Positions 5,452-30,027 are shown, counted from the first letter of the stretch. The stretch is DNA of 32,365 bases from Octopus bimaculoides (GCF_001194135.2 NC_068982.1:5848352-5880716); one strand, 5' to 3'. Program-made: numbers and translations. Notes: generated from the sequence alone by a model not told the origin.

Positions 5452-5490
5452 TATAAATAGGAATGGAATCGAGATAATTTTGCTCAGAAA
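5452..5490 (+). promoter_or_regulatory. Candidate TATA box and initiator for the cytokine-like gene
   Basis: TATAAATA at 5452-5459; Inr-like TCAGAA at 5484-5489, about 30-35 bp downstream; predicts a ~45 nt 5' UTR before the ATG at 5529. Confidence 0.5.
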
Positions 5491-5528: not shown

Positions 5529-5535
5529 ATGCAAG
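5529..5535 (+). CDS. Exon 1 (7 coding nt, ATG CAA G) of putative secreted class-I helical cytokine gene
   Basis: AAAATGCAAG|GTAATA: ATG with A at -3, followed by a GT donor in phase 1. The leftover G joins AC of exon 2 to give Asp and an in-frame signal peptide (MQDILKYCTVAAVLFALQCTIA). TATAAATA lies 77 bp upstream. Confidence 0.7.
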
Positions 5536-5776
5536 GTAATATACAAGTTTCCCAAAGTTAACACAGTAATATATGCATACAAATACATACATACATACAT
5601 GCATGCGCTGTTTATCTTGATATGAGATCACCATATCGCGCACATTTGGTGGTGATGCATGTGCCTGGCCTGGTATACCCTTATCAGACGGGTAGTCATG
5701 AACTGTTTACTGGGCTTCGTATAATTGTACCCCAGTGTCACTTTGATAGCATGCTCTGCTCTCTCACTCAATAACA

Positions 5777-5792
5777 TGTGTGTGTGTGTGTG

Positions 5793-5886
<94 letters not shown>
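5777..5886. repeat. (TG)n microsatellite in intron 1
   Basis: About 55 units, one interruption. Confidence 0.97.
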
Positions 5887-5889
<3 letters not shown>

Positions 5890-6129
5890 TATTTGAAGCG
5901 GTGAACTGATATTGTATATTGAGAAATGGAAGGTAGTCAGAAGTTTGGATAATTCTTATTAACGCTTCCGTTCGTTTATCGAACTCAAGACAAAATCAAA
6001 ATGAATGTATTTTGTTAAATAGCAACACAATATTTAAATGTTTTTTTTTCCTTCAAACAGGAATATCACAGGAATTATTTACCTAAGTTCCAGATTTTGA
6101 ATTTGCTATTTAAATATTTTAGAAGACCA

Positions 6130-6330
6130 AGGCGGCGAGTTGGCAGAAACGTTAGCATGCCTGGCAAAATGCTAAGCGGCATTTCGTCCGTCTTTACGTT
6201 CCACCGAGGTCAACTTTGCCTTTCATCCTTTTGTGGTCGATACAAAAAATACCAGTTGAGCACTGTGGCAGGTGTAATCGACTTCCCCATCCCACAAAAT
6301 TTAGACTCGTGCTTACGATAGAAAAGATTA
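6130..6330 (+). mobile_element. SINE family 1 copy (intron 1)
   Basis: Same consensus; B box partly deleted. Confidence 0.8.
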
Positions 6331-7261
6331 TTGCTTCTTCTATCGAGTCCATACTGATAAGTCTCGAAATGAATTTCGGTAACGTTTGAACTGAGAACAG
6401 ATCTACAGTTGTGGTAATCTCTACTGCATTTAAACGACTACAAATATTGTTTCTTTTTGAATAAGTTTCTGAGTATGTTTGACGGGTACTGCGGTCCGAA
6501 ACCGTCATCCAGCTTTCGCTTCTGGTTGAAGCTACTCTCATGACAATTTTAAAGCTATATAGAAGAGCATGAATGTAGCAGCATCCTAATTTAGCATCCC
6601 AATAAATTTACACCTTTCCATCTAATAACATAAAGCCCTGCATTTATCTAGGAGTCACAAACTCTACAGGAAACGGATAAAGGAGGACACCCCTCAGATC
6701 ACTTTTTTCACCTATACTGTTGATGCTACTGGAAAACGTATGAGCATCGTAAAATCTCAGTTTTACTTTCCCTTAGAATATACAACCAATGATTCTGGTA
6801 AAAAAAAAAAAAAACGTTTTCATCTATTGGAAAAATATTGGGATACCAGTAAGAAAGGGCTGAATATGATTGATATGAAACTAACACTTAGGAATTGACT
6901 GTTTATGGCAATGAACACCTCTCATATGGCAACCTTCACAGGAAACAATAACTCGGTTTTACAAACTCACTAAAAAAGCTTGGAGGGAATGCACACTGCT
7001 TATTGGATTCAGCGTTTTGGCTTGTATCCATATTGACTCCCAGAGTAACATGCAAAGTGTTAAGCATTGAATTCTTAACTTGTTTGTTTGTTTAAGTTTT
7101 GTTCCTTCATTTAATTGGAGATCGAGACTATTGAATGGAGAAAGTAGTGATGAAAAAATGGAGTTTAACTGATTTTGTAGTGTAACTGATGAATTATTAA
7201 GAACAATGCTTTGTAACGATATTCATAGAAGCATATTTTTTTTTAGATATTGTATGTATGT

Positions 7262-7788
7262 ATGTCAGTATTTAGTTTTATTTCAAGGTTTCTTGCCAGT
7301 AGAGAAAGAGCTGGTTTCTATCCTAGATCCAAGGCTCCTTCATTGGAATTTCAGCATCAACAACAGGGTATTTTTGTGTGTGTGTATGTATGTATGTATG
7401 TATGTATGTATGTATGTATGTATGTATGTATGTATGTGTGCAGATTTGTTTGTTTTGTTTTATGTATGTATTCTCATGCATATAGTTACCTATTTAGACA
7501 TACTGATATATATATTTAAATTATAAACGTCTGGAAAGTTTTACAGATTTTTACAGTTCCAGTGATGGATTGGATCTGTAGTCTTCGAATCAGCTTTCTC
7601 CTTTCTGGTTTTGAGAAGCCTAATTTCTCAAGACTGGTATTTAGGCAGTGTGATGCATATCTCATGGGCCTAATAATTACAGGTATGAACCTGAACTTGT
7701 AATCTGGATAGAGTAACTGCAGATTTCTCTATAGTTCAGCATAGGTATTCTCTTTTTCACTGATCTTCAGTTTTATGTTAACATCCGC
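7262..7788 (-). mobile_element. RLE-type (R4/Dong-like) non-LTR retrotransposon, 3' fragment (copy A)
   Basis: - strand ADVNIKLKISEKENTYAEL*RNLQLLYPDYKFRFIPVII... to the ORF end, plus a 3' UTR with an internal (TATG)n and a terminal segment (7265-7375) similar to 24805-24890 and 20595-20690. Confidence 0.75.
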
Positions 7789-7850
7789 TGTATGTATGTA
7801 TGTATGTATGTATGTATGTATGTATGTATGTATGTATGTATGTATGTATG

Positions 7851-8846
7851 TTTTGGTTTATGTATGTATTGTCATGCATATAGTTACATATCTAGACATG
7901 CTCATATATATTTAAGTGATAAACTTCTCGAAAGTTTTACAGTTTTTGACAGTTCCAGTGATGGATTGGATCTGTAGTCTTCGAATTAGCTTTCTATTTT
8001 CTGGTTTTGAGAAGACTAATTTCTCAAGACTGGTATTTAGGCAGATTGTCACATATCCCAGAGCCCAATAATTACAGGTATAAACCTGAAGTTGGCTGGG
8101 CAGCTAATTTCCACAACTGTGCACAGCTTCTCTTCTCTATCTCAAATCATTATATCAAGTCTGTTGTGCTTACATTTTATTAAGGTCTTCACTGGTACAC
8201 TCCACCAGCATTCATTTTCATTATGAGTGACTATGACTCCTACCATATTGTGGGTTTTTATTTCTTTGTTCTCAGGGATATCCTTCCGACGGATTTCATT
8301 GTAGAGTATTCTAGCTACAACATCATGTCTCATCGTTAGATAATGATATTTTCATACAACTGCTTATGATGTGGATATCTTTGGTATTAACTCCACAAAT
8401 TCTGCATCGATTGTCAAATTTTACAGCTTTTCCTGCATCTCTATCCCTTTTGTTCATCAGGTATTTAGTTGATATTTCTTGTTTCTGGATTGCAAACGCA
8501 TACCCTTCAAAGTGGGAGGTAGTAATCCGGCTATTGGTTCATGATAAACTGCTTTGATGATCGATATTATTATCACCACGGAGCATTCTATTAACATATC
8601 CATGCATGATCTGCTACTCATCTTTTCATCTGATGATACGTTGCGGTAGAGTTGTGCGACTTCTTTGGGCATGTATTCTACGTTAACAGACAAAGAATGT
8701 TGTTCAAAGAGCTGCCTTCCAAGTCTTATGATCTTATCAACCTCATGTATGCAAACTTGGTCAAGGGATGCACTTCGACACTTGGTGGTTAAATGATGTT
8801 GCCGATGGAATATGATACGACATTCAAAGGCACTTTGGATCGAGGT
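7851..8846 (-). mobile_element. RLE-type (R4/Dong-like) non-LTR retrotransposon fragment (copy B)
   Basis: - strand AFAIQKQEISTKYL...CRICGVNTKDIHIISSC (degenerate CCHC), RHDVVARILY...WWSVPVKT...KHNRLDIMI*DREE...EISCPA (PD-(D/E)xK region), then an internal deletion to FRFIPVIIGALG...QIQSITGTVK...KF. Its 3' part is near-identical to copy A. Confidence 0.8.
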
Positions 8847-8866
8847 TATGTATGTATGTATGTATG

Positions 8867-8897
<31 letters not shown>

Positions 8898-9094
8898 GAA
8901 CGTGTACATGTACGTACATACAAACATTAATAACTTGTAATGAAAGAACCTAAAAACATTCGGAGTTATCTCCCTTACAACGTGAACCTGTTCAGACAAC
9001 ATCGATTTGATGGCGAGAACGCTTAAATGTACAACGCCTACATTTGAACTGAACACTCATATGTCGTCGTCGACGGGGGAGTCTATCATTATTA

Positions 9095-9476
9095 GTATGG
9101 TTATTGAAAGGAGGGTAAAGAGGGAAATTCTGCTCCGCCCCCAGTAAATTTGTTGAAAGGTGGGTGCATGTGGCGAGGACGGCCCGTGTGAACGGGCCTA
9201 CTCTGAACTTTCGTTTGTAAACCGGAAGAGTTGAGAAGGAGAGAGGCGCCTGCGGATGTACATCTGGCGGTCGGGATAACCAAAATGTGTGGGGTTCTTC
9301 GGTTGTCCCTGTGAAAAACTCCCCACTTTTGATGAATTTTATTATTTAATTGTTTTGTTAATTGTTGTTAATTGTTATTTTATTGTTTACTCGACTTTTG
9401 TGTTAAACCCCACGTGTCCCCAGTATTGTATTGTCCCTATTTGTCTTCTGTTCGGCCCTTGTGGCCAATAAAGAAA
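9095..9476 (+). mobile_element. Tx1/L1-like LINE 3' end
   Basis: KFVERWVHVARTARVNGPTL (from 9146), homologous to EKRWKKVASTLRVN near 19040-19085; T-rich 3' UTR ending CCCTTGTGGCCAATAAAGAAA. Confidence 0.6.
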
Positions 9477-9496
9477 CGATTATTATCATAATTGGT

Positions 9497-9670
9497 AAGG
9501 CATCGAGCTGGCAGAAACGTCAGCACGCCGGGCTAAATCGTTACGTTCTGATTTCAAATTCCACCAAGGTCGGCTTCGCCTTTCATCCTTCCGATGACCC
9601 CCTACTGGGGTCAATGTAATCAACTAGTCCCCTTCCCAAAAACTGCTGCCCTTGTGGCAAAATTTGAAAC
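9497..9670 (+). mobile_element. SINE family 1 copy (intron 1)
   Basis: Same consensus with deletions. Confidence 0.75.
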
Positions 9671-9854
9671 CATTATTATTATAATTGTTCAACATTTGGT
9701 AGTTTCAAACAGATTTCTACTGCATCACGTGCTACATCTCCGTGTTGCTGGGTCTGTGTAGCACCGTGGGTTCTTTTTTGTTGTTAGGAAAATGCAAACT
9801 CTTCCTGGTATTGTATTGCTATTATTATCATTAAACAAGGTTGTTGTTGACAGT

Positions 9855-9921
9855 GATTTCGAAGTTTCGGCCGCTAAGCATTTTCTCCGGCGCGGTAACG
9901 ATTCTGCCAGCTCGCCTCCTT
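9855..9921 (-). mobile_element. SINE family 1 head fragment (intron 1)
   Basis: CCGCTAAGCATTT..CCGGCGCG.TAACGATTCTGCCAGCTCGCC. Confidence 0.7.
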
Positions 9922-9945
9922 AATGATAATAATAATAATAATAAT

Positions 9946-10158
9946 CCTTTCTGCTATAGGCATAAGGGTCTGAAATTTGGGAGAGGGAGCAGTTCATTAG
10001 ATCGACCCCAGTACATAATTGGTACTTAATTTATCGACCCCAAAAGGATGAAAGGCAAAGTCGACCTCGGCGGAATTTGAACTCAGAACGTAGCGACGGG
10101 AGAAATACCGCTAAGCATTTCGTCCGGCGCGCTAACGTTTCTGCCAGGTCGCCGCCTT
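9946..10158 (-). mobile_element. SINE family 1 full copy (intron 1)
   Basis: Near-consensus, reverse orientation. Confidence 0.85.
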
Positions 10159-10194
10159 AATAATAAAATAATAACAATAATAATAATAACAACA

Positions 10195-10418
10195 ACGAAA
10201 AAAATATTCAGACAAATACATAATAAAAACACCAGGACTTACAAATATATATAACATGTAGAAAATTGTACTACTGGGTACTGCACACATCCTACGCAAA
10301 ACTCTTTCAATACAGTAAACATAAGAGCATCACAGCAAACCACAGCACATACCCAAGGCACACAGAGCTGCGCTCGGTAGGGAAGAGAAAGCACGTTATT
10401 AAAATAAAACTACTGAAC
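10195..10418 (+). mobile_element. Dong/R4-like LINE extreme 3' end embedded in (TAA)n
   Basis: Frame ...KIVLLGTAHILRKTLSIQ* (about 10263-10313) matches the typical R4/Dong C-terminus LLGTAxILR; flanked by TAA repeats on both sides. Confidence 0.55.
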
Positions 10419-10496
<78 letters not shown>

Positions 10497-10535
10497 GACG
10501 ACGACGTCGACGATGATGATGATGTTGAAGATGAT
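10419..10535. repeat. (TAA)n followed by (GAC/GAT)n
   Basis: Direct inspection. Confidence 0.95.
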
Positions 10536-10668
10536 TCGATTTAATATAATATGTTCCACGCAAATTTATATCCTTGTGCCTATATTAGAAATTGCTAATA
10601 ATCGTCAGTGGAATTTGTTGTTTAATCCATTTAAAAAAAATTAAAATTTTTTGTTTTCTTATTTGTAG

Positions 10669-10907
10669 ACATCCTGAAGTATTGTACTGTCGCAGCAGTT
10701 TTATTCGCTCTTCAATGCACGATTGCATTACCAGTCACTAAAGTTCCAGTAATTCCGTGGCATCATCCCTGCACGCCTTCCTCACAATATACTTATGAAG
10801 ATATACAGCATTTCATCGAAGGAGAAAATGCAACGAAACTTTTCAACAGATTACTTGAAAAAACTAAAGAAACTTTGGATCTTGTCAGGAATATACGTGA
10901 AACTATG
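10669..10907 (+). CDS. Exon 2 of putative helical cytokine (signal peptide, PWHHPC motif, predicted helix A)
   Basis: Acceptor ttttttgttttcttatttgtAG at 10667-10668. The frame ILKYCTVAAVLFALQCTIALPVTK...PWHHPC...TKLFNRLLEKTKETLDLVRNIRETM has no stops. Donor ATG|GTAACT at 10908, phase 0. Confidence 0.87.
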
Positions 10908-11162
10908 GTAACTACATCTTTTTTTTTTTTGATGTCTTGGGAGCGTCATTACGCCAATAATAATGACACTCACACTGATTTAATATCACTTCTTTATCTA
11001 ACCAAATAACTAATCGTTTGTTTATTTAATGTGCTGTTTAAACAATTAATCGGTTGTTTGTTAGTCAAAGTCTTTTCAACGCTGTTCGCGACTTTCCCAG
11101 TGGCGTCGCTCACTCCTCAAGGGCTGCTCTGAGTCTGTCCAAGTATTGGTCTTATGCTTGTG

Positions 11163-11197
<35 letters not shown>

Positions 11198-11287
11198 AGG
11201 CGCGCATATATGCATGACGTTAGCCAAATACAGTTTCCGTCAACCAAAGGCACCCTCAAAACTTTAGTCATCTCGGGGCCTTAGTAG

Positions 11288-11635
11288 NNNNNNNNNNNNN
11301 NNNNNNNNNNNNNNNNNNNNNNNNNNNNNNNNNNNNNNNNNNNNNNNNNNNNNNNNNNNNNNNNNNNNNNNNNNNNNNNNNNNNNNNNNNNNNNNNNNNN
11401 NNNNNNNNNNNNNNNNNNNNNNNNNNNNNNNNNNNNNNNNNNNNNNNNNNNNNNNNNNNNNNNNNNNNNNNNNNNNNNNNNNNNNNNNNNNNNNNNNNNN
11501 NNNNNNNNNNNNNNNNNNNNNNNNNNNNNNNNNNNNNNNNNNNNNNNNNNNNNNNNNNNNNNNNNNNNNNNNNNNNNNNNNNNNNNNNNNNNNNNNNNNN
11601 NNNNNNNNNNNNNNNNNNNNNNNNNNNNNNNNNNN
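11288..11635. other. Assembly gap in intron 2 (other gaps: 14982-15158, 17157-17702, 18583-18822, 20215-20223, 30028-30896)
   Basis: Runs of N. Confidence 1.
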
Positions 11636-11647
11636 AAAAGAATATTA

Positions 11648-11880
11648 AAGGCGACGAGCTGGCAGAATCGTTAGCACGCCGGGCGAAATGCTTAACAGTA
11701 TTTCGTCTGCCATTACGTTCTGAGTTCAAATTCCGCCGAGGTCGACTTTGTCTTTCATCCTTTCGCGGTCGATAAATTAAGTACCACTTATGCACTGGGA
11801 TCGATGTAATTGACTTAATCCCTTTGCCTGTCCTTGCTTGTCCCCTCTCTGTTTAGCCCCTTGTGGGTAATAAAGAAATA
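11648..11880 (+). mobile_element. SINE family 1 variant with a Tx1-like 3' tail (intron 2)
   Basis: Family-1 head and core, but ending TTGTCCCCTCTCTGTTTAGCCCCTTGTGGGTAATAAAGAAATA, similar to the LINE end at 9430-9476. Confidence 0.75.
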
Positions 11881-12078
11881 AGAAACATTAAAACGCCAGG
11901 CGAAATGCTTAGCTGTATTTCATCTTTCTTTACGTCTGTGTTCAAATTCCGCCGAGGTCGACTTTGCTTTGCATCCTTTCGGAGTCGATAAATTAAGTAC
12001 CAGTTGTGTACTGAGGTCGATCTAATCGATTGCCCCCCTCCCCAAAAATTTCGGGCCTTGTGTTTAGAGTAGAAAAGT
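11881..12078 (+). mobile_element. SINE family 1 copy lacking the first ~17 nt (intron 2)
   Basis: Starts at the AGAAAC position of the consensus, directly after the previous element's tail. Confidence 0.8.
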
Positions 12079-12174
12079 ATGTTTTATTAATTCTTATTAA
12101 TCATGGTTAATATTTTATCAATTCTTTGTATTGAAAATTAATTTTTCAAAACTATTTTTTTTTTATCTTATTAG

Positions 12175-12270
12175 GCAAAAAGATTTAATGAAACCGAATT
12201 ACTAAAAGATCTTCGCAACTTAACCGTTCTAAATCGTTCAGAAATTCCCGAAAAAAGACGATATCGAGGG
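12175..12270 (+). CDS. Exon 3 (96 nt, phase 0-0) of putative helical cytokine (A-B loop)
   Basis: Acceptor tttttttttatcttattAG at 12173-12174; frame AKRFNETELLKDLRNLTVLNRSEIPEKRRYRG; consensus donor GGG|GTAAGT at 12271. Confidence 0.87.
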
Positions 12271-12707
12271 GTAAGTTGTAACTGTTTACCTATATAATAC
12301 ACACGTAGATTTAATTCTCAACAGCCACACTTACCATTTCTCTCACACTGCTTCGATACATGCATACATGCCTACCAGTAAACACATGCAGTTTAGGGTG
12401 GCACCGCTAAGCAGTGATGTGTGTAAATTCAAACTTGCTCCTAGTTCAAATATTCAAACTCGTATGAAAGCAATTCACTGTATTTTGTCATGGAGAAAAT
12501 TTCTCGCTCTTGAAAAATAGGTACAAATGCATCGAGTCAGGTCACAGCTCTCCCTAACTAGGCTGTTGGATACATGTATTTCGAAGTGGTTACCTCATCT
12601 TCAGCAAAAAATGCCAGACAAATGATTGATTGCTTTATATTAAACAGTCATGTATACTCTATAGCTTACGTGAGGTATATAGGTGTGCTCTTAGTATTTA
12701 GTGACAC

Positions 12708-12897
12708 AGGGCAACAAGTTGCTAGAATCGTTTGCACGTTGGGCAAAATGTGCTTTGTGGAGTTCAAATTCCGTTGAAATCACTATGCTTTTCATCCCTC
12801 TCAAGGTTAATATAACAAGTACCAGTTGTGCACTGGGATCGATGTGCACCTACACCCCGCAATTGCTGGCCTTGTGCCTAAATTTGAAACCAATATT
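12708..12897 (+). mobile_element. Old SINE family 1 copy (intron 3)
   Basis: Diverged match including GAGTTCAAATTCC and AAGTACCAGTTG. Confidence 0.65.
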
Positions 12898-13029
12898 CAG
12901 TAACAGGAATTTAATGGCTTGATTGAAATAAATTGGTTTGAAAATGAAACAGAAACCTGACCCTCGACTGCAATCGTTCGGGGATAAATTTTTACCCTAC
13001 GACAGCCATTCTCTAAATGTTCTAATAAT

Positions 13030-13235
13030 CCTTTCTACAAGGCCTGAAATTTATGGAGAGGGGACTAGTCTTTTACATCGACTCCAGTGATCAACTGGTA
13101 CTTGGTTTATCGATCCCGAAAAGATGAAAGGCAAAGTCAACCGCAACGGAATTTGAACTCAAAACGTAGTGACGGGCGAATTATCGCCAAGCATTTCGTC
13201 GAGCGTGCTAACGATTCTGCCAGCTCGCCACCTTC
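13030..13235 (-). mobile_element. SINE family 1 copy with 17-bp TSD (intron 3)
   Basis: Consensus match; CTAAATGTTCTAATAAT at 13013-13029 and 13236-13252. Confidence 0.9.
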
Positions 13236-13321
13236 CTAAATGTTCTAATAATATAATTTTTAAGGTGTTTATAAATTAAGTCGTTTATATATATATATAT
13301 ATATATATATTCTTTTTTCAG

Positions 13322-13687
13322 TATTTACAAAATATCAGTACGCAACGATACAGCGATCATTATAATGACCTGTCAAAAGTAGCTGTTGTTCTGGAACAAG
13401 TACATAAAGATGAAAACGAGGAAGAAATGAAAAACATCTTAGATGATCTAACGAATGATAACTTTTCTATGCAATGTGAACTTTATCAAATGATGTGGAT
13501 TTTTAACCTTGCAACCTTCGATGCAATCGACCGTTCTTTTATGCCAAGAAACCTACGTGAAATGGGAAGTACGTTTAAACGTTACAAAAGAGACTTTGTT
13601 TTCATAACTGAATACGAGAACATCTTGCAAGAGCACTATTCTACATACTACTCTATTAAACATCAAAAGAATCTGCAAGAGACATAA
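13322..13687 (+). CDS. Exon 4 (terminal coding exon) of putative helical cytokine (predicted helices B, C, D)
   Basis: Acceptor ttcttttttcAG at 13320-13321; 121 codons YLQNIST...VAVVLEQVHKDE...SMQCELYQM...KRYKRDFVFITEYENILQ...QET then TAA. Includes ORF-track ORF 13427-13687 in the same frame. Total spliced CDS is 708 nt (235 aa plus stop). Confidence 0.9.
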   Translation, partial: YLQNISTQRYSDHYNDLSKVAVVLEQVHKDENEEEMKNILDDLTNDNFSMQCELYQMMWIFNLATFDAIDRSFMPRNLREMGSTFKRYKRDFVFITEYENILQEHYSTYYSIKHQKNLQET

Positions 13688-14072: not shown

Positions 14073-14131
14073 TGCATGGATGGACGGATGGATGGATGGA
14101 CCGATGGATGGATAGACGGATGGATGGATGG
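14073..14131. repeat. (GGAT)n microsatellite
   Basis: Direct inspection. Confidence 0.9.
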
Positions 14132-14573
14132 AAGATCAGATATTTTATATATATCTTGCTATTATTTATTATATTGGGCCTTGTGCCTGTAGAAAGAATA
14201 ATTATTTATTATATTTTTGTTACAATTTTGGAGATTTGAGTTTTCACTCACTTTCCTTTATTTGATAAAATTCAACAAGATCTGAGAAATTTACTAAACT
14301 ACCTTGCTTCCTCACTAATCAAGTCCATGTGACGTGATAAAAGATGGACATATTATACGAAAAACAAAGTCATGCATTGCATTATTTAAAAAATTTGAAG
14401 AAAAAATTGTTTAAGGAAATCAATTATTTTGTTACAAATATACCCTTTATTTATTCATATTTAACTAATTTATAATTAATCTAATAATATCATCGATTAC
14501 TGGGTCAGAGGGCATTTTTATGTGTGCAACAACGCCTGTTAGAATAGTTTTGATGTTGCTCAGAAGAAATCTA

Positions 14574-14960: not shown

Positions 14961-15158
14961 TGTAGTGTTAGGGTAAAATTTNNNNNNNNNNNNNNNNNNN
15001 NNNNNNNNNNNNNNNNNNNNNNNNNNNNNNNNNNNNNNNNNNNNNNNNNNNNNNNNNNNNNNNNNNNNNNNNNNNNNNNNNNNNNNNNNNNNNNNNNNNN
15101 NNNNNNNNNNNNNNNNNNNNNNNNNNNNNNNNNNNNNNNNNNNNNNNNNNNNNNNNNN

Positions 15159-15485
15159 CGATTACCAGACCGGGCGTTGTGAGTGTTTATTGAGCGAAAA
15201 CAGCTAAAGCTCCACGTGGTTCTGGCAGAGGGGTGGTGGGGGCGAACTCTACTGTACTCTTTCACCACAACTTTCTCTCACTCTACCTGTTTTTGTCTTA
15301 CCTGCATTTCAAAGGGCCAGCTTTGTCACACTCTGTGTCACGCTGAATCTCCCCCGAGAACTACGTTAAGGGGTACACGTGTCTGTGGAGTGCTCAGCCA
15401 CTTGCACATTAATTTCACGTGCAGGCTGTTCCGTTGATCGGATCAACTGGAACCCTCGTCGTCGTAACCGACGGAGTGCCACGAT
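15159..15485 (+). mobile_element. SINE family 2 copy (5' end in gap)
   Basis: Colinear with 27485-27806. Confidence 0.85.
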
Positions 15486-17010: not shown

Positions 17011-17702
17011 TTTGAGCGAACTATTTTCACAGAGTTTACGTGCTATCATCAGCCTATGAAACCATCATAATATCGTTATTATTACAGTCTGAAAAGATAA
17101 GATTCAAGTTATTTCAGATATATTACACAATTATTATTGTTAAACTCTTTTTGTTGNNNNNNNNNNNNNNNNNNNNNNNNNNNNNNNNNNNNNNNNNNNN
17201 NNNNNNNNNNNNNNNNNNNNNNNNNNNNNNNNNNNNNNNNNNNNNNNNNNNNNNNNNNNNNNNNNNNNNNNNNNNNNNNNNNNNNNNNNNNNNNNNNNNN
17301 NNNNNNNNNNNNNNNNNNNNNNNNNNNNNNNNNNNNNNNNNNNNNNNNNNNNNNNNNNNNNNNNNNNNNNNNNNNNNNNNNNNNNNNNNNNNNNNNNNNN
17401 NNNNNNNNNNNNNNNNNNNNNNNNNNNNNNNNNNNNNNNNNNNNNNNNNNNNNNNNNNNNNNNNNNNNNNNNNNNNNNNNNNNNNNNNNNNNNNNNNNNN
17501 NNNNNNNNNNNNNNNNNNNNNNNNNNNNNNNNNNNNNNNNNNNNNNNNNNNNNNNNNNNNNNNNNNNNNNNNNNNNNNNNNNNNNNNNNNNNNNNNNNNN
17601 NNNNNNNNNNNNNNNNNNNNNNNNNNNNNNNNNNNNNNNNNNNNNNNNNNNNNNNNNNNNNNNNNNNNNNNNNNNNNNNNNNNNNNNNNNNNNNNNNNNN
17701 NN

Positions 17703-19200
17703 ATGAGACAAAACTGAACCCTCCTAGCGAGGTTTCGAATTCAACATCGAGAAAAACAATCGTATTCAAAACGTTTGTAATAAAAAAAAAAAGAAAAAAA
17801 AAAATCGACTTGGCATAAAAAGAAGCGGTCGAAAAATGTTTTAGGCCTATCTGGCAGGAAATAATGTACCTGATCAGGGACAAAAGATTTGCAATGGTAG
17901 AAGTGCGGTTCCAGGCGGAAGAAAAAGCCAGGCAACATTCAACGGCCTCCCTTAAGACCGCTGAAGTGGTTCTCCTTCCAACATACCTTGAAAGGCGCAC
18001 TTGCAAGGTAAGGCTGGGACAAATTCCACCGGAGGTCGATGTTGCCTGGCTCGAGGCAGCCATAATCTTGAGCTTGGAGGATAAAATAACTATCCTCAAA
18101 GCAACCAAAATGCACCAACAGAATTGGCAGGGGGCAGGGATTGGAGATGATAATTCATGTTGCCCCTGCCGACTTAGATGAGACTGCACACACCATAACG
18201 GTGGGAGAGGAAACGAAACTAAGCGTCATGGTGGAGGGCACAGAACCTCGCCGTTATAAGTGTGGCCAAAAAGACCATATTAGAGTAGAATACCCTCCTC
18301 CACCTCCCCCAAAAAATACCAGTGCCCCCACTAGTTGGAAAAACAGCCGCATCTCCACCTCCTGCGACGACAGAAGTGGAGAGGAGAAAAGCAATGCAGG
18401 AGAATCCTAAACCTACCAAAAGAAAAGAACCGAAAATTGAAAAGATGACCCAGGACAGAGAGTGGACTGTCGTTCCCCCACAAAAAAAAAAAGAAAGAGC
18501 CCCCTCCCTACTCCTCAGATAAACTCGCCAGGCACGGCTCTTCGTGCTCGCCCATTTGCCCAAGATGCGCGCAGAGCAGTTTNNNNNNNNNNNNNNNNNN
18601 NNNNNNNNNNNNNNNNNNNNNNNNNNNNNNNNNNNNNNNNNNNNNNNNNNNNNNNNNNNNNNNNNNNNNNNNNNNNNNNNNNNNNNNNNNNNNNNNNNNN
18701 NNNNNNNNNNNNNNNNNNNNNNNNNNNNNNNNNNNNNNNNNNNNNNNNNNNNNNNNNNNNNNNNNNNNNNNNNNNNNNNNNNNNNNNNNNNNNNNNNNNN
18801 NNNNNNNNNNNNNNNNNNNNNNTTCCGAGTCTATAATATTGTTCCACTGCCCTCTCTGAACAGGGAAGGGAAGGTTTGTTTTATCTCTATAGTGGTAGTG
18901 GCAAAAAAGGTCGTGTAGAGGACATGCATAAAAGGTTCAATGGCAGGCATTTTCATCTCCATCCTTTGTTTAGTAAACTTTTTTTTATTTCCCATCTTAA
19001 ATAAGGCTGGAGAGGAGACACTTGCCGCTCATTGTATATGAGAAAAGATGGAAGAAAGTCGCAAGCACGTTGAGAGTGAATGCGCCAGCTTAAGGGAGAA
19101 CATAAAACTCTCTTAAAGGGTTCAGTGGAGGAACGTGGTTTGTGGGGTCGCACCCGTCCCTCACTCCATCATCATTTTCCAATTTTATATATCATCATAA
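17703..19200 (+). mobile_element. Tx1/L1-like LINE: ORF1 (gag-like, decayed zinc knuckle) and ORF2 C-terminus, split by a gap
   Basis: SLKTAEVVLLPTYLERRTCKVRLGQIPPEVDVAWL and VMVEG..PRRYKCGQKDHIRVEY (CCHC with two Cys lost). After the gap: VPLPSLNREG...LVNFF..HLK...EKRWKKVA. Confidence 0.65.
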
Positions 19201-20040: not shown

Positions 20041-20251
20041 CAGCCAACGAATCAAATCAACGCACAAGACAGCCATTATGTCCCCACACATAAAACGCTT
20101 CCACGTGGACTCTGTTGACACCAGTAAGAAACAATTATGAACTTTTCTTTTAATTACATGTTTTAAAATATGTATTTTTGATAAGGTTCGTTTTTTCAGG
20201 AAGAACCGAAACATNNNNNNNNNNTATATATATAAATATTATATATATATA

Positions 20252-20377: not shown

Positions 20378-20692
20378 ACTTCTATATTCAGATTATAAAT
20401 TCACATTTACACTAATGACAATTGATGCGCTTAGTGTTTGTGATTAAATGTCTAAGAGACAATCTGGATAAGTTTTCATGTTCAGAAAAAAGAAATCAAC
20501 CAACTAACTCGCACGATACAAATACAGTCTGTAAGTGGAACAATAAAAATATGCTAGACTTTTCTTAAGTTTAAAGTGTGACATTGTCTTTGCTATCTAT
20601 ATTCCAACGATGGAGGTTTCTATCTTTGTTACAAACTAGCTTCTTCCTTAGAGGAAGAATTTAAGTAATTAAAGACAGAAGAGAACAAACAT
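20378..20692 (+). mobile_element. RLE-type LINE 3' end (copy C)
   Basis: DYKFTF...QIQSVSGTIKIC*TFLKFKV* plus a 3' UTR colinear with 24590-24890 and with copies A/B. Confidence 0.7.
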
Positions 20693-20985
20693 ATATAAAT
20701 ATATAAACATACTTACATACGGGTACAGGACAACTCAACACCACCAACTAACACCGCCGACTCAATACCACCGACTCAACGCCAGGGCAACTCAACACCG
20801 CCAACTTAACACTGCCAACATCAACATCGCCGACTCAACGCCAGGAAAATTGATTAACAAATAAGTTATTTGTCTCATAACATCATCAGAAATTCATAAA
20901 AGTTTAATTTGATACATGACAAGTTCTACTTTTTTGTTTTATTCAAGCCAAGTATTAAGATTAATCTTCTATATTTATAAAATTG

Positions 20986-20987
<2 letters not shown>

Positions 20988-21037
<50 letters not shown>

Positions 21038-21090
21038 AGTGTATCTGTGTGTCAGTGTGTCTGTGTGTCAGTGTGTCTGTGTGTGCGTAG
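20988..21090. repeat. (GT)n microsatellite inside the foldback element
   Basis: Direct inspection. Confidence 0.95.
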
Positions 21091-21409
21091 ACATTCATGT
21101 TTTTTATAGAAATCCACATTCAATGTCAGATTGACCTCAGATTTTATACACATACTCCATAAGGTCAGAGCTAGGTCATGGCGAAGAAATCACCCCCGTG
21201 ACCTGCATGCATGATCGGGGGCATACACATAAAGTGACCTTATGCACACATGTGTTGCTGAACTTTTGTTCACGCCTTAATTGCTCCGCTTTACACGTTA
21301 ATGTGTTATTTGATGGGGGAGAGCAGAAAGCCTCATGCACCAACACGTTTTGCACCTCTAGCTACCCTTTTGACACATTTTTTGGCCCAATGAATGAAGC
21401 ACTTACCCT

Positions 21410-22850
21410 TTCTTTGCAGGTTCAATGTAATGCTACCTTAAAAAAAACAGTTGCCGAACGTTTAGTCATTACATCATTACACTTTTTTACTTTGAAGAAA
21501 GACAGCAAATGAACCCATGTTCCATACTTTTTGCAAGTACTCCTTCCCATTTTGGACGATCCACCTGAGTCATTGCGGTATCTTTTAACAGACGCAGACG
21601 AAGAATGCCGGCACTTCCGGAGCAACATGAGAGAGTATAACTGCGCCTTTCAGATGACATCATTTGGTGCGAATATCGTTAGGGAAGGCGGCTTCATGCC
21701 TACATTTAAAATTCAGGGGCAGATTTACCACAGAATTGGACCCCTTCTACTCGCTGCCAACGAAACACCGTAGTTCCTCCAGGTGTATTTTGTCGGTGAC
21801 TACGAAACACAGGCGACACGCCGAAGAGCTATTTCCCCCGGCACAAGTTTTGAAGTAATTATTCAACTCCAGAAAATGTTGCACATGCATTACTCTTACA
21901 TAAAGAGCTTTAAGTATGCCTTGGAATTTCTATTAGTGCCGGACTTCACAGTGGTTATCAACGCTGACAAACGGCCGGCAAACGACCATTCTGGTCGCTA
22001 CAATGCGCCCAATTACAACGAAATTGTCATTGTGCTCGGCGGAGAACAGCACAACCCCAGAAGCATTGTTCTTTCGTGCCGTGACCAAACTGTAAAGCGC
22101 ATCAACGAGACACACAGAGCATACGACGCACTCCAGTATCCACTTCCTTTTGTGCGCGGAGAAGATGGCTACCACTTGGGTCTTCACCAGCGGGTGCCGC
22201 GCAGACAAAATGAAACGAGTACCAAACAAGTTTCGTGCATACAGGTCTACTCGTACCTCTTCATGCTCCATCACGACTGCACTAACCACCTCCAGTGATC
22301 GTGCGACCTGTTCCACCAATTTGCCGTCGATGTTTGGGCAAAAATGGAATCTGAGAGGTTATCCTATATCAGGTTTGACCAGCAGAAACTTCGATTAGAC
22401 AGCTACATCCATCTTAGGGATGGTCTCAGCAATGACGTATCACCCGGAGGGTTGGGTCAGGTGTGCATCTTGCCGTTATCTTTCACTGGCGGCCCACGCT
22501 ACATGCACGAAAAAATGCAATGACATACGTCCGCTACTACGAGCGTCCTGACTTATTTATTACCTTCACCTGTAATCCTAGGTGGGGTGGGGGAGATTAG
22601 AATAGAACTTTTTCAGGGTCTGCAGGCCAAAGACAGACATGATCTCATTGCGCGGGTCTTCCATTTGAAGTTACACAAACTCATGAACTTCATCACCAAA
22701 GGCCAAATATTTGGCCCCGTGCATTGCAACATGTATACCGTTGAATGGCAGAAAAGGGGTCTGAGATTAAATTTGATAATTGCCTCGGCAGAGTATACAC
22801 GGTTTACCCGGGCCAACAAGAATGCTTCTACCTCCGATTGCTGCTTCACG
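21410..22850 (+). mobile_element. Helitron RepHel N-terminal/Rep fragment (Helitron_like_N region), degenerate and internally deleted
   Basis: YNCAFQMTSFGA, FKIQGQIYHRIG, YDALQYPL, LFHQFAVD, ILPLSFTGGPRYM, RPDLFITFTCNP, RHDLIARVF, YTVEWQKRGL (ends about 22763), then LGRVYTVYPGQQECFYLRLLL. Confidence 0.9.
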
Positions 22851-23072
22851 AGTGTTATTGCTAGTCTTTTTATAAAATTCTGATAATGTTATAAAACGAA
22901 TAAATTATTTATTAATGAATTTTCCTGGTGTTGAGTTGTCCTGGCGTTGAGTCGGCGATGTTGAGTCGGCGATGTTGAGTCGGCGATGTTGAGTCGGCGA
23001 TGTTGAGTCGGCGATGTTGAGTTGGTGGTGGTGAGTTGTCCCTATTCGTTACATGCATACATGAATTTATGC

Positions 23073-23103
<31 letters not shown>

Positions 23104-23105
23104 CA

Positions 23106-24895
23106 TCTTAGTGGATGACATGAAAATTTATGCTACAAATGTTAACAATGCCAAAAACAACTGGAATTAATAACAATTCCAGCATGGAATTTGGCCGAAA
23201 GAAATGTCAACATTTGATTGTCGAATGGGGGAATCAGTCCCCAAACCCCAAACCTGAACATCAATGGTCTTTTCTTCTCTCCTGTTCCATACAAAGAATA
23301 CAACAAAAACCTTGACATCAATGAAACATATCTTATTAAGTTGTTGTGAATGACGACAGCGTGACTCGATAATTTCGACCCAGACGCAGAAAATATGGTC
23401 ATCGGATCTTTTCTCCGGCAACAAGACAATATCCCACAATGCATTTGCAGCAGAGCCAGTACTAATTCCAATATTTAGGATACTTAGGCAGCGAGATGGC
23501 AGGAACGTTAGCGGTATTTTGTCTGTCTTAATGACGTTCTGAGTTCAAATTCCGCCGATGTCGACTTTGCCTTTCATCCTTTCGGGGTCGATAAATTAAG
23601 TACCAGTTGCGTACTGGGGTCGATCTAATCGATTGGCTCTCTCCCAAAATTTCGGGCCTTGTGCCTAAAGTAGAAAAGAATATTTAGGATACTTGATTGG
23701 TCTGTAGACATTAAAGCCCTTCAAAATCCTGACATCAACTGAGACTTCAAGCCGGAACAGTGATATCGACAGGCTCTACCAAAGAGATGAAGGAGGTGGA
23801 AGCTCTAGACCAGTGCAGAGAACCTTTGAATGCCGCATAATCTCCCAGACAACGCCTGTTAAGCAACGGATGCAAAACTTAATACATAAACTTAATACAT
23901 AAACTTAATACATAAACAACGTCCTACGTGGTACCAACGACTTCCTCGAAAGCACTCTCTCCTACGCAATCTCTCAGTCAACCCCAAAATAGCTGAATTA
24001 ACAAACCTCAGCATAACACAAAAAAAAACATGATCTATGCATGTGGATGTTTCCTGTATATTCAGAGGAGACGGTAATATAGACAAAAAGTCTCTTGAAG
24101 TTGTGAGAATTACATCTTATCACTCTTCGAAGGCTACACATTTGCAATCCAAGGACAAGAGATCACTACAAAATATCTAATAAACAGACATTGAGGCCCT
24201 AGGAGCCTCAGGATGCAACGGAAAATGTAGATTGTTACATTGCTGTGGAAGGCATCGCACATGTCACCAAGATACTGCCTTCCTATGCGACATGGCGTTG
24301 TCTCTAAAATAATATACGATGCCTTAAAAAGAAAAGACTGCCCTGTGATAGATAGACAGACTTCTCCACTGAACGTGAATGCATACACAAACATCAACAC
24401 AAAGAATATTGGTGGAACGTTCCCATCAAAACATACGTTAAGTGTAAACATAACAGGCCGGATATTATTGTTTGGGATGGACAAGAAAAGTATGTACTAT
24501 TAGAGAGGTCAGTTGTCCTGCTGACGTGAATATCTTTTTGAAGATCAAAGAAAAAGAGGATTACTTCGGACAATCTTCAGCTTCTATATCCTGATTATAA
24601 ATTCACATTTAGACCAATAATAAATGGTGCACTTGATTTTGTGAGTAAATGCCGAAGTGGGAATCTGGATAAGATTAGGTCTTCAGAAAAAGAAATCAAC
24701 CAGCTAATTCGCACGTTATAGACGCAGTCTGTAAGTGGGTGGAATGGGTGGGTGGGGGGAAGGAAAGGTCATTCACAAGTTTAAAATGTGAATTTGTTTT
24801 TGTTGTCGACATTCCAACGATGGAGCTTTCTGTCTTCGTTAGAAACCAGCTCCTTCATCAGAGAAGGATTTCAAATAATTAAAAACATAAGAGAA
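23106..24895 (+). mobile_element. RLE-type (R4/Dong-like) LINE, 5'-truncated at the RT catalytic motif (copy D), carrying a SINE insertion
   Basis: LVDDMKIYA (23108), SMEFGRKKC, IWSSDL...NKTISHNAFA..PVL..ILDW, IDRLY..EGGG, FAIQGQEITTKYL, RHGVVSKIIY, WWNVPIKT..KHNRPDIIVWD, SCPADVNI. Many frameshifts. Confidence 0.8.
23486..23678 (+). mobile_element. SINE family 1 copy with 16-bp TSD, inserted in RLE LINE copy D
   Basis: AATATTTAGGATACTT at 23470-23485 and 23679-23694; the LINE reading frame continues across when the SINE is removed. Confidence 0.9.
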
Positions 24896-25052: not shown

Positions 25053-26900
25053 TCAGGTGTATTGTTCGTGGAGTTCAGAAAGCATGGAAGTTATGGAGGA
25101 TGTAGTGTCTCGACAGCTAACGACTGATGCAGGTGATTTAGACCATGCTTCAAGAGATCTGAGCGTGCAAAAATGTTTCCGAAAGTGATGGGTGCTGTGT
25201 TGTCTTTGGATTTTCTGAATATGCCTACGAGTGTTTGACATATGGAATTCAAAAGGGTGCCCAAAGTTGTTGTTGGTAAGATGACGAATAATCTTGCGGG
25301 TGTTGTCCAAGTCAGTTACCAGACGTCTGAGCTTCAATGTGTCCATGCCCTGGGAAGCAAGACGTTCAGAGTATGGTAGATACCTGATGGCGGGTATTCG
25401 TTTTGTTGTCCATTTCTGAACAGTTTTCATGAGATTTATATGCTGAGCAAGATAAGGGTTCCATACTGGTGATGCAAATTCTAAGTGTGGACATACCATT
25501 GTCATATACAGTTTTAAATAGACAGCCGGAGAGCGGCTGACAAAGGTCTTACTGAGTGATGCTAGGACAGCCTCAGCTTTCTTGACAATCTTAGAGATGT
25601 GGTTTGTCCAGTGCAGATCACTATTTACAATAATACCCAGATCACGTTCACTAGAAGACCGTTTGAGATTGGTGTTGCTGAGGGAGTATATAAAGGTTGG
25701 GTTTTTCTTTCCGAAATTTATGCTGATGCACTTGTCCACAGTGCGTCAGCATACAGCTAGCTTGAGTTGCCAGTCAGAGATCCATTGCTCCGTTGTGTCC
25801 AGGTCTGATTGCAGAAAAAAATCTAAAGCGCATAGGATCTGTTCATTTTATTTCGAGGTACAGCTTGATGTCTTGTGCATATTTCAACACTGTAACATTC
25901 CTCAAGTTGGCATCTGTGTCATTAATATATGCAACAAACAATATGGATCCAAGAACGGATCCTTGTGGTACACTAGACGTCATCTTGTAGGGTGAAGAAT
26001 GATGTCCTAGAACCGTAACTCCTTCTTTCCGATCGAGAATGAAGGACTTCAGCCAGTTACAGAGATCATCTTTCACACCAATTGCAGAGAGTTTTGCCAT
26101 GAGTCGTTTGTGTGGCACAGAATAGAAGGCTTTAGCAAAGTCAAAGTAGATAGCAACCACCAATGAGCCACCATCAGTAACTCGGGTGATGCCCTCAAGA
26201 AACTCGATGAGCTGGCTATAGCAGCTGGAGTTAGGGATAAATCCAAATTGTGAGGGTCGAATAAGGCTGTGAGAGCTCCAGAAGTTCCAGAGTGTTTCTA
26301 TGACACAGAACTCTATCACTTTGAGGATTCAGCTAGTGAGACTGACTGGACAGTAGTTGACAAGTGATGTGCGATCACCTTTGTTTGAACAGGGGAACGA
26401 CATTGGCAATTTTCCAGTGCTCTGGAGTGACACAGTAGTGAAGGCAGAATTGAAAGAAGAGTGAAATCTGGTGCAAAAGAAAGAACCCGCCACGTTTGAG
26501 AAGCAAATAAGTAACACCATCAAGACCAGGAAAGGCATTGTTGCGTTTGTTCTTGAGATGGCATCGCAGAATTGCGGGTGTGAATTTCACAGACGTTATG
26601 GAATTTGATGTCAGAGTTAGTAAAGAAGGTACATTGGGATTTTCAACAGTGAAAATGCCAGCATGGCATTCAGCAATAAGCTCAGCACGTTCCTTGGGAA
26701 CATCAGTGATCCGATCTGTGCGGGGATTGTAAAGAGGGCCAACTGGAGAGTGAGATCTCTGTTTCGAACGCACATATTTCCATAACACTTTGCTCTCAGG
26801 ACTGGCTGCTATACGTTGTTCAAACTCAAGCGCTGCTCTTTTTTGTCGCTTGCTTGAGACGGTTGGATGATCTGTTGCGTCGTCTTCTGTTCTCATCTGT
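25053..26900 (-). mobile_element. CR1-clade LINE ORF2 (RT and C-terminus), 5'-truncated, degenerate
   Basis: LWKYVRSK, PGLDGV, WKIANVVPLFK, NYCPVSLTS, SQFGF, YFDFAKAF, VPQGSVLG, catalytic motif mutated to YAQD, ERDLGIIVNSDL, PHLEFASPVWNP, LKLRR. No endonuclease domain seen. Confidence 0.9.
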
Positions 26901-26989
26901 TCTATGCTGTCTGTATTTCTGTTCAGTATCACGACAATCCTTTCTGACAAGTCGAACTGCTGCAGTCTCCCAAACTGCACTTTTTAGAT

Positions 26990-27340: not shown

Positions 27341-27422
27341 ATTTATAAATTCTATAGAACCTTTTGATTTTGCCTCAAATTTAAATACAGTACAACTAAT
27401 CCTTCTATATAATTCCCTTATA

Positions 27423-27806
27423 GTGGAGGCGCAGTGGCCCAATGCTTAGGGCAGCATATTTGCGGTCGTAGGATCGCGGTTTCGATTCCCAGACCGGGCG
27501 TTGTGAGTGTTTATTCAGCGAAAGCACCTAGAGCTCCTCGAGGCTCCGGCAGAGGGTGGTGGTGAACCCTGCTGTACTCTTTCACCACAACTTTCTCTCA
27601 ATCTTTCTTCCTGTTTCTGTTGTATTTGTATTTCAAAGGGCCGGCCTTGTCACACTCTGTCTCACGCTGAATCTCCCCCGAGAACTACGTTAAAGGTATA
27701 CGTGTCTGTGGAGTGCTCAGCCACTTGCACGTTAATTTCACGAGCAGGCTATTCCGTTGATCGGATCAACTGGAACCCACATCGTCGTAACCGACGGAAT
27801 ACCGCG
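27423..27806 (+). mobile_element. tRNA-derived SINE family 2, full length with 12-bp TSD
   Basis: A box GTGGCCCAATGC, B box GTTTCGATTCC; AATTCCCTTATA at 27411-27422 and 27807-27818; second copy at 15159-15485. Confidence 0.85.
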
Positions 27807-29135: not shown

Positions 29136-30027
29136 CTGTGAGTTGTACGAGCTTCTTTGTTTGACTATATTGTGTACTTGTTTGTGCTGCGCTTGCAGCG
29201 GTTTTTGAGTTGTTGTGCCGTCTGTCGGTAGTACTGAGAGATGGCCGGTGGAAGACGAGTATATTCGGACCTGAGCGAGACTGAGTTGTCCTCTTCGGAA
29301 GAGGAACTGGTTAAGGCAACAAAGATGTTGGATGCATGTTTGAAAGAGAAAAGTTTTGCAGAGGCAACCGAGATGAGAAGGAAGAAAATAAACCTCGAAA
29401 ATATGGAAAGAGACAGTAGAATGGCTGTAAAGGTGGAGAACGACGTGAGGCTGTCCCTACCGCAGACAAGGATGGAGGAAATACAAAAGAAGATGGTAAC
29501 TTATAAAGTTTACTCAGTTGAGAAAAAGAGAATCGACCACATGGAGGAGAGAGAGATGGACAAAGCGCTGAAGACAGTCTGGCCAGTGGATGAAAGTTCG
29601 GGACGATTGTCGTCCATTAAAAAACAGAGGAAAGAGCGATAGGCCACGCTACCAAAGTGTTAAAAACGGAAAAGGCAGTCCTCCCGCCGTCTTACATGGG
29701 CAAGAGGATTGGCAAAATCAAAATGGAAGGGATTCCCCCTGAAATCGATGCGGTTTGGGTGGTGGAGGCTATCTTTATTGAAAGAGAAAAAGAGGTGAAG
29801 GTGGTTCAAGCAGAAGTGATGGAAGGGACAAATCGTCAAAATTACCGTCCAAGCTGAGATGGAGGTCCTCGAAGTGCTACCCGAGAACCTGTGGATTGGG
29901 GATTTGAGCCTGAAAGTGTGGGTGGAGGGCAGGATTCCTCGCTGTTTTAAATGTGGCCTGAAATAACTGCCCTCCACCACCCAAAATGGTAGAAGAGCGA
30001 CAACCACCACCACAGGAGAGGATACAA
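29136..30027 (+). mobile_element. Tx1/L1-like LINE 5' UTR and ORF1 (degenerate), running into a gap
   Basis: ATG at 29241. VLKTEKAVLPPSYMGKRIGKIKMEGIPPEIDAVWV is homologous to the 17.9 kb ORF1; VWVEGRIPRCFKCGLK is the start of a zinc knuckle; stops and frameshifts present. Confidence 0.65.

Follow-up and report, generated by a model that had tools for sequence, protein, structure and literature searches.

Introduction

Does an octopus encode a secreted helical cytokine that could act as a ligand for the mollusc JAK-STAT pathway? This question is raised by a stretch of 32,365 nucleotides (nt) from Octopus bimaculoides (NC_068982.1:5848352-5880716; hereafter the window), in which an earlier reading of the sequence alone had proposed a cryptic four-exon gene, between positions 5529 and 13687, for a secreted four-helix cytokine resembling IL-6 and Unpaired. 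Our analysis supports the overall interpretation of this sequence-only reading. The best explanation, which we consider probable, is that the locus carries an intact, unannotated octopod gene belonging to a mollusc family of secreted, N-glycosylated four-helix proteins, that these proteins have a fold of the CNTF/IL-6/G-CSF/LIF class, and that the product serves as a receptor ligand.

A 2026 survey reported IL6R-like, gp130-like and Domeless-like receptors, JAK and STAT in molluscs, including cephalopods, found no IL-6-type ligand and suggested that other ligands may drive the mollusc pathway (PMC13203501). In the literature on cephalopod and mollusc helical cytokines and on structure-based cytokine discovery, we found no description of the mollusc family treated here, of its accessions or of a cephalopod JAK-STAT ligand. 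The only prior hint that the family consists of cytokines is the automatic UniRef name of its Lottia member, V4A536.

Results

A reading frame of 235 codons split over four exons

On the plus strand of the window, four segments of 7 + 239 + 96 + 366 nt join into a 708-nt frame of 235 codons, which runs without stop or frameshift to a TAA codon at 13685-13687 (Table 1). All three introns are of the GT..AG type. The donor sites (AAG/gtaata, ATG/gtaact and GGG/gtaagt, with the slash marking the exon boundary) rank in the top 3% among all GT sites of the window, and the strong pyrimidine tracts of the acceptors (tttgttttcttatttgtag, ttttttttttatcttattag and tatatatattcttttttcag) rank in the top 1-5% among all AG sites. 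When the splice model was rechecked, the proposed four exons with canonical sites proved to be in frame and to yield the stop-free open reading frame (ORF) of 235 residues. As the sequence-only reading had also pointed out, the sole part of the product visible as an ATG-initiated ORF is its last 86 residues (13427-13687).

Met82 is the only in-frame ATG in the exon 2 frame from the upstream stop at 10632-10634 to the 3' end of the exon. Because exon 2 therefore has no usable in-frame start codon, it needs an upstream exon, and because it is preceded by a top-1% acceptor, it is internal. Neither the 235-residue product nor the 86-residue ORF has an exact record in a collection of 15 billion proteins, so the gene is unannotated in that collection and earns its earlier description as cryptic. 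The gene is present as a single copy, with no second copy or paralogue found in the window. The spliced protein matched nothing in Pfam, in a word-indexed homologue search or among PDB sequences; in a word-indexed search, the family profile recovered three proteins and did not find even P0001.

Homologues in other molluscs

The 121 residues of exon 4 were compared exhaustively with 1.84 billion representative proteins using phmmer, and ten proteins were recovered at E <= 1e-3. The best match was XP_036356621.1 of Octopus sinensis, an 'uncharacterized protein LOC118762197' (E 1.1e-16, 48% identity). Exon 4 also matched LOTGIDRAFT_174018 / V4A536 of Lottia gigantea (E 4.6e-4), whose automatic UniRef name is 'Ciliary neurotrophic factor', and the remaining matches were Logan/ENA contigs. 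The full spliced protein is colinear with the O. sinensis paralogue (E 9e-35, 37% identity), and its residues 14-229 align end to end with residues 11-237 of the Lottia protein (E 2e-13, 23% identity). Exons 2 and 3 are colinear with the same two relatives. Because these full-length alignments are colinear, exons 2, 3 and 4 correspond to one protein in two other species, and the window gene has this exon 2-3-4 structure.

The motifs PWxxPC, LSKxAVFLE, CEL, R-x-I-M-P and F-x-R-Y-x-R-D are common to the family. Two residues, Cys166 and Arg185, do not vary over 12 sequences, and Leu131 and Arg201 are nearly invariant; all four residues are kept in the window protein, which shares with the family its full-length similarity, its motifs and its two conserved cysteines. 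The gene structures also correspond. Rebuilt on its contig, the annotated Lottia gene comprises four coding exons (19/245/108/345 nt) separated by introns of phases 1,0,0, and the window gene (7/239/96/366 nt, phases 1,0,0, exon 1 being predicted) has the same four-coding-exon layout. Intron 2 lies at the identical aligned site in the two genes (RETM/AKRF in the window, RQTM/FTER in Lottia). The O. sinensis paralogue carries a 96-nt exon at the place of exon 3 (14388-14483 of its locus, L005), and Lottia exon 3 is 108 nt long with phase 0-0. The window gene thus displays the structure of the family, namely a tiny phase-1 first exon and two phase-0 introns, one following helix A (...TM/) and the other preceding helix B, and the gene model proposed earlier agrees with both end-to-end alignments and with the matching exon layout and phases. 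Together, these sequence comparisons show homology of the window gene to O. sinensis LOC118762197 and Lottia V4A536, with intron positions and phases as in Lottia.

Logan contigs of ~1-1.4 kb from four sequencing runs (L007-L010, from SRR14492773, SRR8427105, SRR14492782 and SRR26458964) contain a continuous ORF that leads from a PWxxPC-type motif through helix A and '...TKM/SKDR...' to helix D. In another species, therefore, a member of the family is transcribed and spliced in this manner; the contigs say nothing of the window gene itself. In these mRNA-like contigs the ORF extends from RWTNPC to the C-terminus, and an in-frame stop stands just upstream of the expected signal peptide. This stop could reflect a misassembly, retention of intron 1 or an alternative 5' end.

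The loci of the two relatives have features of their own. XP_036356621.1 looks mis-modelled, as its start Met lies within the part that aligns to the signal peptide's end, and upstream of this Met the frame stays open as far as an acceptor (...ttacag/GATACC...). On O. sinensis CM016860.1 (L005), exon 2 occurs twice, at 7794-8267 and 9923-10360, about 2.1 kb apart, and an extra exon of 25 residues, which has no equivalent in Lottia or in the window gene, lies at about 14126-14236. On Lottia KB201194.1 (L004), an exon-2-like ORF with the motif PWKTPC (21108-21488; family profile E 1.2e-5) lies inside a neighbouring gene (20526-23450+) downstream of the Lottia homologue and on the same strand. 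Because this neighbour carries such an ORF, the family is tandemly duplicated in Lottia. The upstream neighbour of the Lottia homologue is 239 residues long.

Predicted secretion, glycosylation and fold

By inspection, the protein begins with a predicted signal peptide, MQDILK-YCTVAAVLFALQC-TIA/LP, in which a 13-residue hydrophobic core lies between the n-region MQDILK and T-I-A at positions -3 to -1. Cleavage is predicted after TIA22/LP (~10727), and a signal peptide equivalent to this one occurs in the Lottia homologue. Six N-glycosylation sequons are present (N56, N87, N97, N102, N118 and N161), about three times the 1.97 expected from shuffles (P = 0.007), and the sequon just ahead of helix B recurs among family members. 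Two cysteines, Cys 8 and Cys 19, fall within the signal peptide, and Cys 37 and Cys 166 lie in the mature part. The sequence-only reading had described the same six sequons and the same two cysteines after the signal, and our inspection agrees with its hydrophobic N-terminal signal cut near TIA/LP as a prediction.

To obtain a fold for the family, AlphaFold2 (AF2) was run on the Lottia member with a 15-row alignment that also contained translations of the three window exons. The resulting model (predicted local distance difference test, pLDDT, 79.9; predicted template modelling score, pTM, 0.77) contains long helices at 63-93, 125-151, 156-182 and 206-237. Its loops are long AB, short BC and long CD, with short helices within the AB and CD loops, and the helices run up-up-down-down, as in a long-chain class-I bundle.

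We compared this model with the PDB using Foldseek, and all 50 of the matches listed were long-chain class-I helical cytokines. The top match was CNTF (8d74_D; E 1.3e-2, probability 1.00, target-normalised template modelling (TM) score 0.78), which was also matched as 1cnt. After CNTF, the listed matches comprised G-CSF, CLCF1, IL-11, IL-6, IL-27p28, OSM, LIF, leptin, prolactin (PRL) and growth hormone (GH). Target-normalised TM scores ranged from 0.75 to 0.80, with OSM at 0.80 and IL-11 at 0.79. The alignments were sequential over 165-197 columns, and therefore the connectivity is matched and not merely the packing of the helices. In a viral library, cytokine homologues were the only matches to pair high probability with a TM score of ~0.5: vIL-10 of CyHV-3 came out on top (probability 0.97), and HHV-8 K2/vIL-6 was also found (probability 0.90). 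The predicted structure shows a cytokine-type fold for the mollusc family.

The Lottia helices were mapped through a gap-poor alignment onto the window protein, where they take up residues 59-86, 120-146, 150-174 and 198-229; all ten of its Pro and Gly residues lie outside these four segments. The helices that had been proposed earlier, at about 57-82, 121-145, 148-176 and 199-228 with long/short/long spacing, fall within a few residues of the mapped ones.

The first exon and the assembly gap

Of the candidate first exons, 5529-5535 alone has a good donor together with a -3 purine (gacaaaATGc) and a TATAAA lying 40-120 nt upstream; these features were picked as criteria after the fact. From the A of an initiator (Inr)-like element at 5486, the implied 5' untranslated region is ~43 nt. 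The Lottia gene likewise has a tiny phase-1 first coding exon (19 nt), which therefore supports an exon of this kind in the window gene. An alternative first exon at 7664-7682 (MGLIIT) is less likely, having C at -3 and no TATA; it starts on the final base of a 157-nt block with a local duplicate, and this was also counted against it.

The N gap at 11288-11635 is wholly intronic, beginning 380 nt past the exon 2 donor and ending 539 nt before the exon 3 acceptor, and so the reading frame never meets it. The Lottia protein spans the exon 2/3 junction with zero residues missing. Because this alignment is gapless and the intron sits at the same aligned site, no hidden coding sequence is required in the gap. 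The sequenced part of intron 2 holds no counterpart of the extra 25-residue exon of O. sinensis; an optional exon may lie inside the gap.

Features of the locus and its surroundings

The coordinates of the gene and of other features are collected in Table 1. No AATAAA is found inside 1.3 kb downstream of the stop codon.

Table 1. Features of the window, with positions counted from its first nucleotide.
Feature	Position	Strand	Remarks
Putative TATA box, TATAAATA	5452..5459	+	Consensus match only, in AT-rich DNA; suggestive
Inr-like TCAGAA	5484-5489	+	TATA start at ~-34 from the A at 5486
Exon 1, coding part, ATGCAAG	5529..5535	+	Predicted; Met-Gln and first base of Asp3; donor AAG/gtaata; ends in phase 1
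Intron 1, 5133 nt	5536..10668	+	Rich in microsatellites and repeats resembling short interspersed nuclear elements (SINE-like)
Exon 2, 239 nt	10669..10907	+	Residues 3-82; rest of signal peptide, conserved PWxxPC with Cys37, sequon N56, most of helix A; matches exon 2 of both O. sinensis and Lottia
Intron 2	10908..12174	+	Holds assembly gap 11288-11635 and SINE-like copies 11648-11815 and 11935-12061
Exon 3, 96 nt	12175..12270	+	Residues 83-114, phase 0-0; end of helix A and glycosylated AB loop (N87, N97, N102), as predicted
Intron 3, 1051 nt	12271..13321	+	Carries SINE-like copies
Exon 4, coding part	13322..13687	+	Residues 115-235 and TAA; sequon N118; helices B, C and D
Predicted helix B	13337-13417	+	Exon 4; mapped from Lottia model
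Predicted helix C, with invariant Cys166	13427-13501	+	Exon 4; mapped from Lottia model
Predicted CD loop, with invariant Arg185 (R-S-F-M-P)	exon 4	+	From family alignment
Predicted helix D, from F-x-R-Y-x-R-D motif	13571-13666	+	Exon 4; mapped from Lottia model
Poly(A)-signal-like ATTAAA	13942..13947	+	Nearest hexamer, 255 nt past stop; consensus match only
Remnant of a retrotransposon of the long interspersed nuclear element (LINE) type, run of ORFs	25053-26980	-	ORF 25843-26316 matches Pfam RVT_1, E 2.2e-18
Assembly gaps	11288-11635, 14982-15158, 17157-17702, 18583-18822, 20215-20224, 30028-30896		Runs of N

The window is AT-rich, with microsatellites, SINE-like repeats, a LINE remnant and six assembly gaps in 32 kb, and some of its listed ORFs exist only by running through N. 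The window and the O. sinensis locus have interspersed repeats in common, which reach 91% identity, and none is shared with the Lottia contig or the ENA contig. These repeats and the closest relative, an O. sinensis protein, agree with the cephalopod origin put forward in the sequence-only reading and point to an octopod. The repeat at 27422-27798 shares 91% identity with O. sinensis L005 20921-21297, and an 88%-identical second copy of this element occupies 15159-15479. A SINE-like repeat of ~170 nt fills the introns in both orientations (9985-10163, 11648-11815, 11935-12061, 12757-12851, 13061-13239 and 6187-6306). Its copies overlap no exon, related copies occur at the O. sinensis locus (74-88% identity), and ARAGORN found no tRNA genes in these repeats. 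At 10400-10530, ~140 nt upstream of exon 2, an (AAT)n/(GAT)n microsatellite gives rise to poly-Asn/poly-Asp in the ORF 10266-10544; it is intronic and non-coding.

Two further ORF-bearing regions lie on the plus strand. The most GC-rich part of the window, 21531-22298, holds consecutive ORFs of 80 and 171 residues with no Pfam match, and is possibly a transposon remnant. At 29241-29642, adjoining an 869-nt gap, a 133-residue ATG ORF is rich in Glu, Lys and Ser and has a sub-threshold match to Pfam 'Ephrin' (E 0.0016, 18.8 bits vs a cutoff of 25).

Discussion

Our analysis supports the view that the window protein folds and works like an IL-6-family cytokine. Several observations weigh against this reading. 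None of 12 family members was significant against the Pfam profiles CNTF PF01110, IL6 PF00489, LIF_OSM PF01291 and IL11 PF07400; the best score, to IL11, came from one member only (E 0.069, 13.2 bits vs a cutoff of 25.8). The family profile retrieved no cytokine from PDB sequences, only spurious coiled-coil-type matches. The fold check suggested in the sequence-only reading was carried out on the Lottia relative, for which AF2 and Foldseek gave a cytokine bundle. When the family was compared by hhalign with an alignment of 17 amniote CNTF sequences, the probability was 0.1%. BLASTP of the Lottia protein against human CNTF gave E 0.28, and orthology to CNTF or IL-6 is not shown by these sequence comparisons. 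Foldseek E-values are modest (~1e-2), and the fold was modelled on a 23%-identical Lottia relative and transferred to the window protein by alignment. Exon 4 alone was predicted by AF2 as all-helical with a pLDDT of 44.5 and was not used in the fold search. The hydrophobic moment at 100 degrees, a crude measure, gave P = 0.027 for helix A and P = 0.16-0.40 for helices B-D. The window gene's own transcript and splice junctions are predictions, and its first exon, unproven and predicted from sequence features, is the weakest part of the model, with 506 phase-1 first exons formally possible upstream of exon 2. Finally, receptor binding and STAT activation by the window protein are something we infer entirely by analogy.

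A stretch of the AB loop is common to the Lottia protein (P0010) at 108-119, DGMPLISDIEEW, and human CNTF at 54-64, DGMPVASTDQW (DGMP..W). It is the only segment that hhalign aligned, and it is not significant; the two stretches lie in a topologically equivalent loop.

How do other explanations fare against the same evidence? Characterised proteins of the long-chain bundle topology act via class-I/II cytokine receptors, which counts against the idea that the cytokine fold here does another job, as a hormone of the GH/leptin type or as a secreted protein that does not engage gp130/Domeless receptors, for example a lineage-specific secretory or venom/salivary component. Such a role would fit the Foldseek results, in which IL-6-type matches are not separable from those to G-CSF, leptin, prolactin and GH. 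It would also fit a family that no sequence motif links to gp130 ligands and that has a tandem duplication in Lottia and several paralogues, as fast-evolving secreted families often do. We nevertheless judge it unlikely, since the best Foldseek matches are IL-6-family members and orphan class-I-type receptors are present in molluscs (PMC13203501). It is more improbable still that the gene is a silent or decaying paralogue, or that its true first exon is elsewhere or missing, so that no functional secreted protein arises from the model. The product has no record in public protein sets, canonical AATAAA was not found, exon 2 lacks an in-frame start ATG, and exon 1 contributes only 7 coding nt from 5.1 kb upstream, with all the formal alternatives noted above. 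These points are set against 235 open codons that retain every invariant family residue, a top-1% acceptor ahead of exon 2, the tiny phase-1 first exon of Lottia, and the standing of 5529-5535 as sole candidate with donor, -3 purine and TATA.

The signal peptide and two furin-like basic clusters, KRR 109-111 and RYKR 200-203, would also suit a prohormone or neuropeptide precursor cut at these sites. We rejected this reading as very improbable, because the dibasic sites are either unconserved or inside a helix: KRR 109-111 is absent from the O. sinensis and Lottia proteins, and RYKR belongs to the conserved F-x-R-Y-x-R-D motif with which the confidently modelled helix D starts. Moreover, there is no Gly-Lys-Arg amidation signal (GKR/GRR) and there are no repeated peptide units, and the whole length is conserved as a single domain. 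Could the ORF instead be a chain put together by chance from GT/AG sites in AT-rich DNA? When splice sites can be chosen freely, such chains are readily obtained, and a 122-codon open frame is expected ~0.5 times per window (an estimate from base composition). This idea is refuted by the exon 4 match at E 1.1e-16, by the ordered matches of exons 2 and 3 and by the matching Lottia intron phases, and we give it practically no credence.

Under the preferred explanation, a secreted receptor ligand, transcription would start from a TATA promoter near 5452 and yield a 235-residue precursor whose signal peptide would be cut after Ala22. The mature protein would have ~213 residues and carry as many as six N-glycans, most of them in the AB loop, and a predicted Cys37-Cys166 disulfide would tie the N-terminal PWxxPC segment to helix C. 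By analogy with its fold class, the extracellular ligand could gather class-I receptors of the gp130/Domeless-like type through their cytokine-binding module. Receptor assembly would then activate JAK and STAT, as suggested by the fold class and by the reported presence of the receptors, JAK and STAT in molluscs (PMC13203501).

The window gene, the 'uncharacterized' octopus protein and the Lottia protein together provide a concrete, clonable candidate ligand for mollusc JAK-STAT signaling. If an octopus receptor were bound and activated, the way in which this pathway is triggered in the immunity, regeneration or neural biology of lophotrochozoans could be put to the test, and the origin of gp130-type cytokines would be pushed before the protostome-deuterostome split. 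Genes of this kind are missed or truncated by standard annotation because their first exon is tiny, their introns are long and filled with repeats, and their sequence evolves fast.

Among known systems, Drosophila Unpaired (Upd1-3, the ligands of Domeless) offers a functional analogy only: in both cases a protostome protein is secreted and glycosylated, has been proposed to be helical and is presumed to be a JAK-STAT ligand. Upd proteins are larger and very basic. The two named proteins among the ten exon 4 relatives are molluscan and none is identifiable as arthropod, a weak result that comes from the exon 4 query only, and no Upd structure appears among the 50 PDB matches listed.

The vertebrate proteins CNTF, CLCF1, LIF, OSM, IL-6, IL-11, IL-27p28 and G-CSF match the window protein in predicted fold and connectivity and in being secreted glycoproteins of ~200 residues. 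In contrast, sequence likeness to the vertebrate IL-6 family is not detectable, and the cysteine pattern is unlike that of IL-6 or G-CSF. CNTF is not known to have a signal peptide, whereas one is predicted in the window protein. In human IL-6 the first coding exon is 19 nt long and the introns have phases 1,0,0,0, and LIF and OSM have a disulfide from the N-terminus to helix C. The tiny phase-1 first exon and phase-0 introns of the window gene resemble the IL-6/G-CSF pattern, and its predicted N-terminus-to-helix-C disulfide resembles that of LIF and OSM; each resemblance is a hint of common descent over convergence. We regard it as possible, though rather doubtful, that the family is the lophotrochozoan descendant of the gene ancestral to vertebrate IL-6/CNTF/G-CSF and provides the orphan gp130/IL6R/Domeless-like receptors of molluscs with their natural ligand. 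If common descent were true, gp130-type helical cytokines would have arisen in the bilaterian ancestor rather than in vertebrates.

The closest comparison is with O. sinensis LOC118762197 and Lottia V4A536. The O. sinensis gene model differs in its start inside the signal peptide, its extra 25-residue exon at the exon 2/3 junction and its duplicated exon 2, and at 37% identity the window gene is a distinct paralogue of it and not an orthologue; identity to the Lottia protein is 23%. Both proteins nevertheless compare as true homologues of the window protein, with which they have a length of 226-238 residues, a predicted signal peptide and the family motifs in common.

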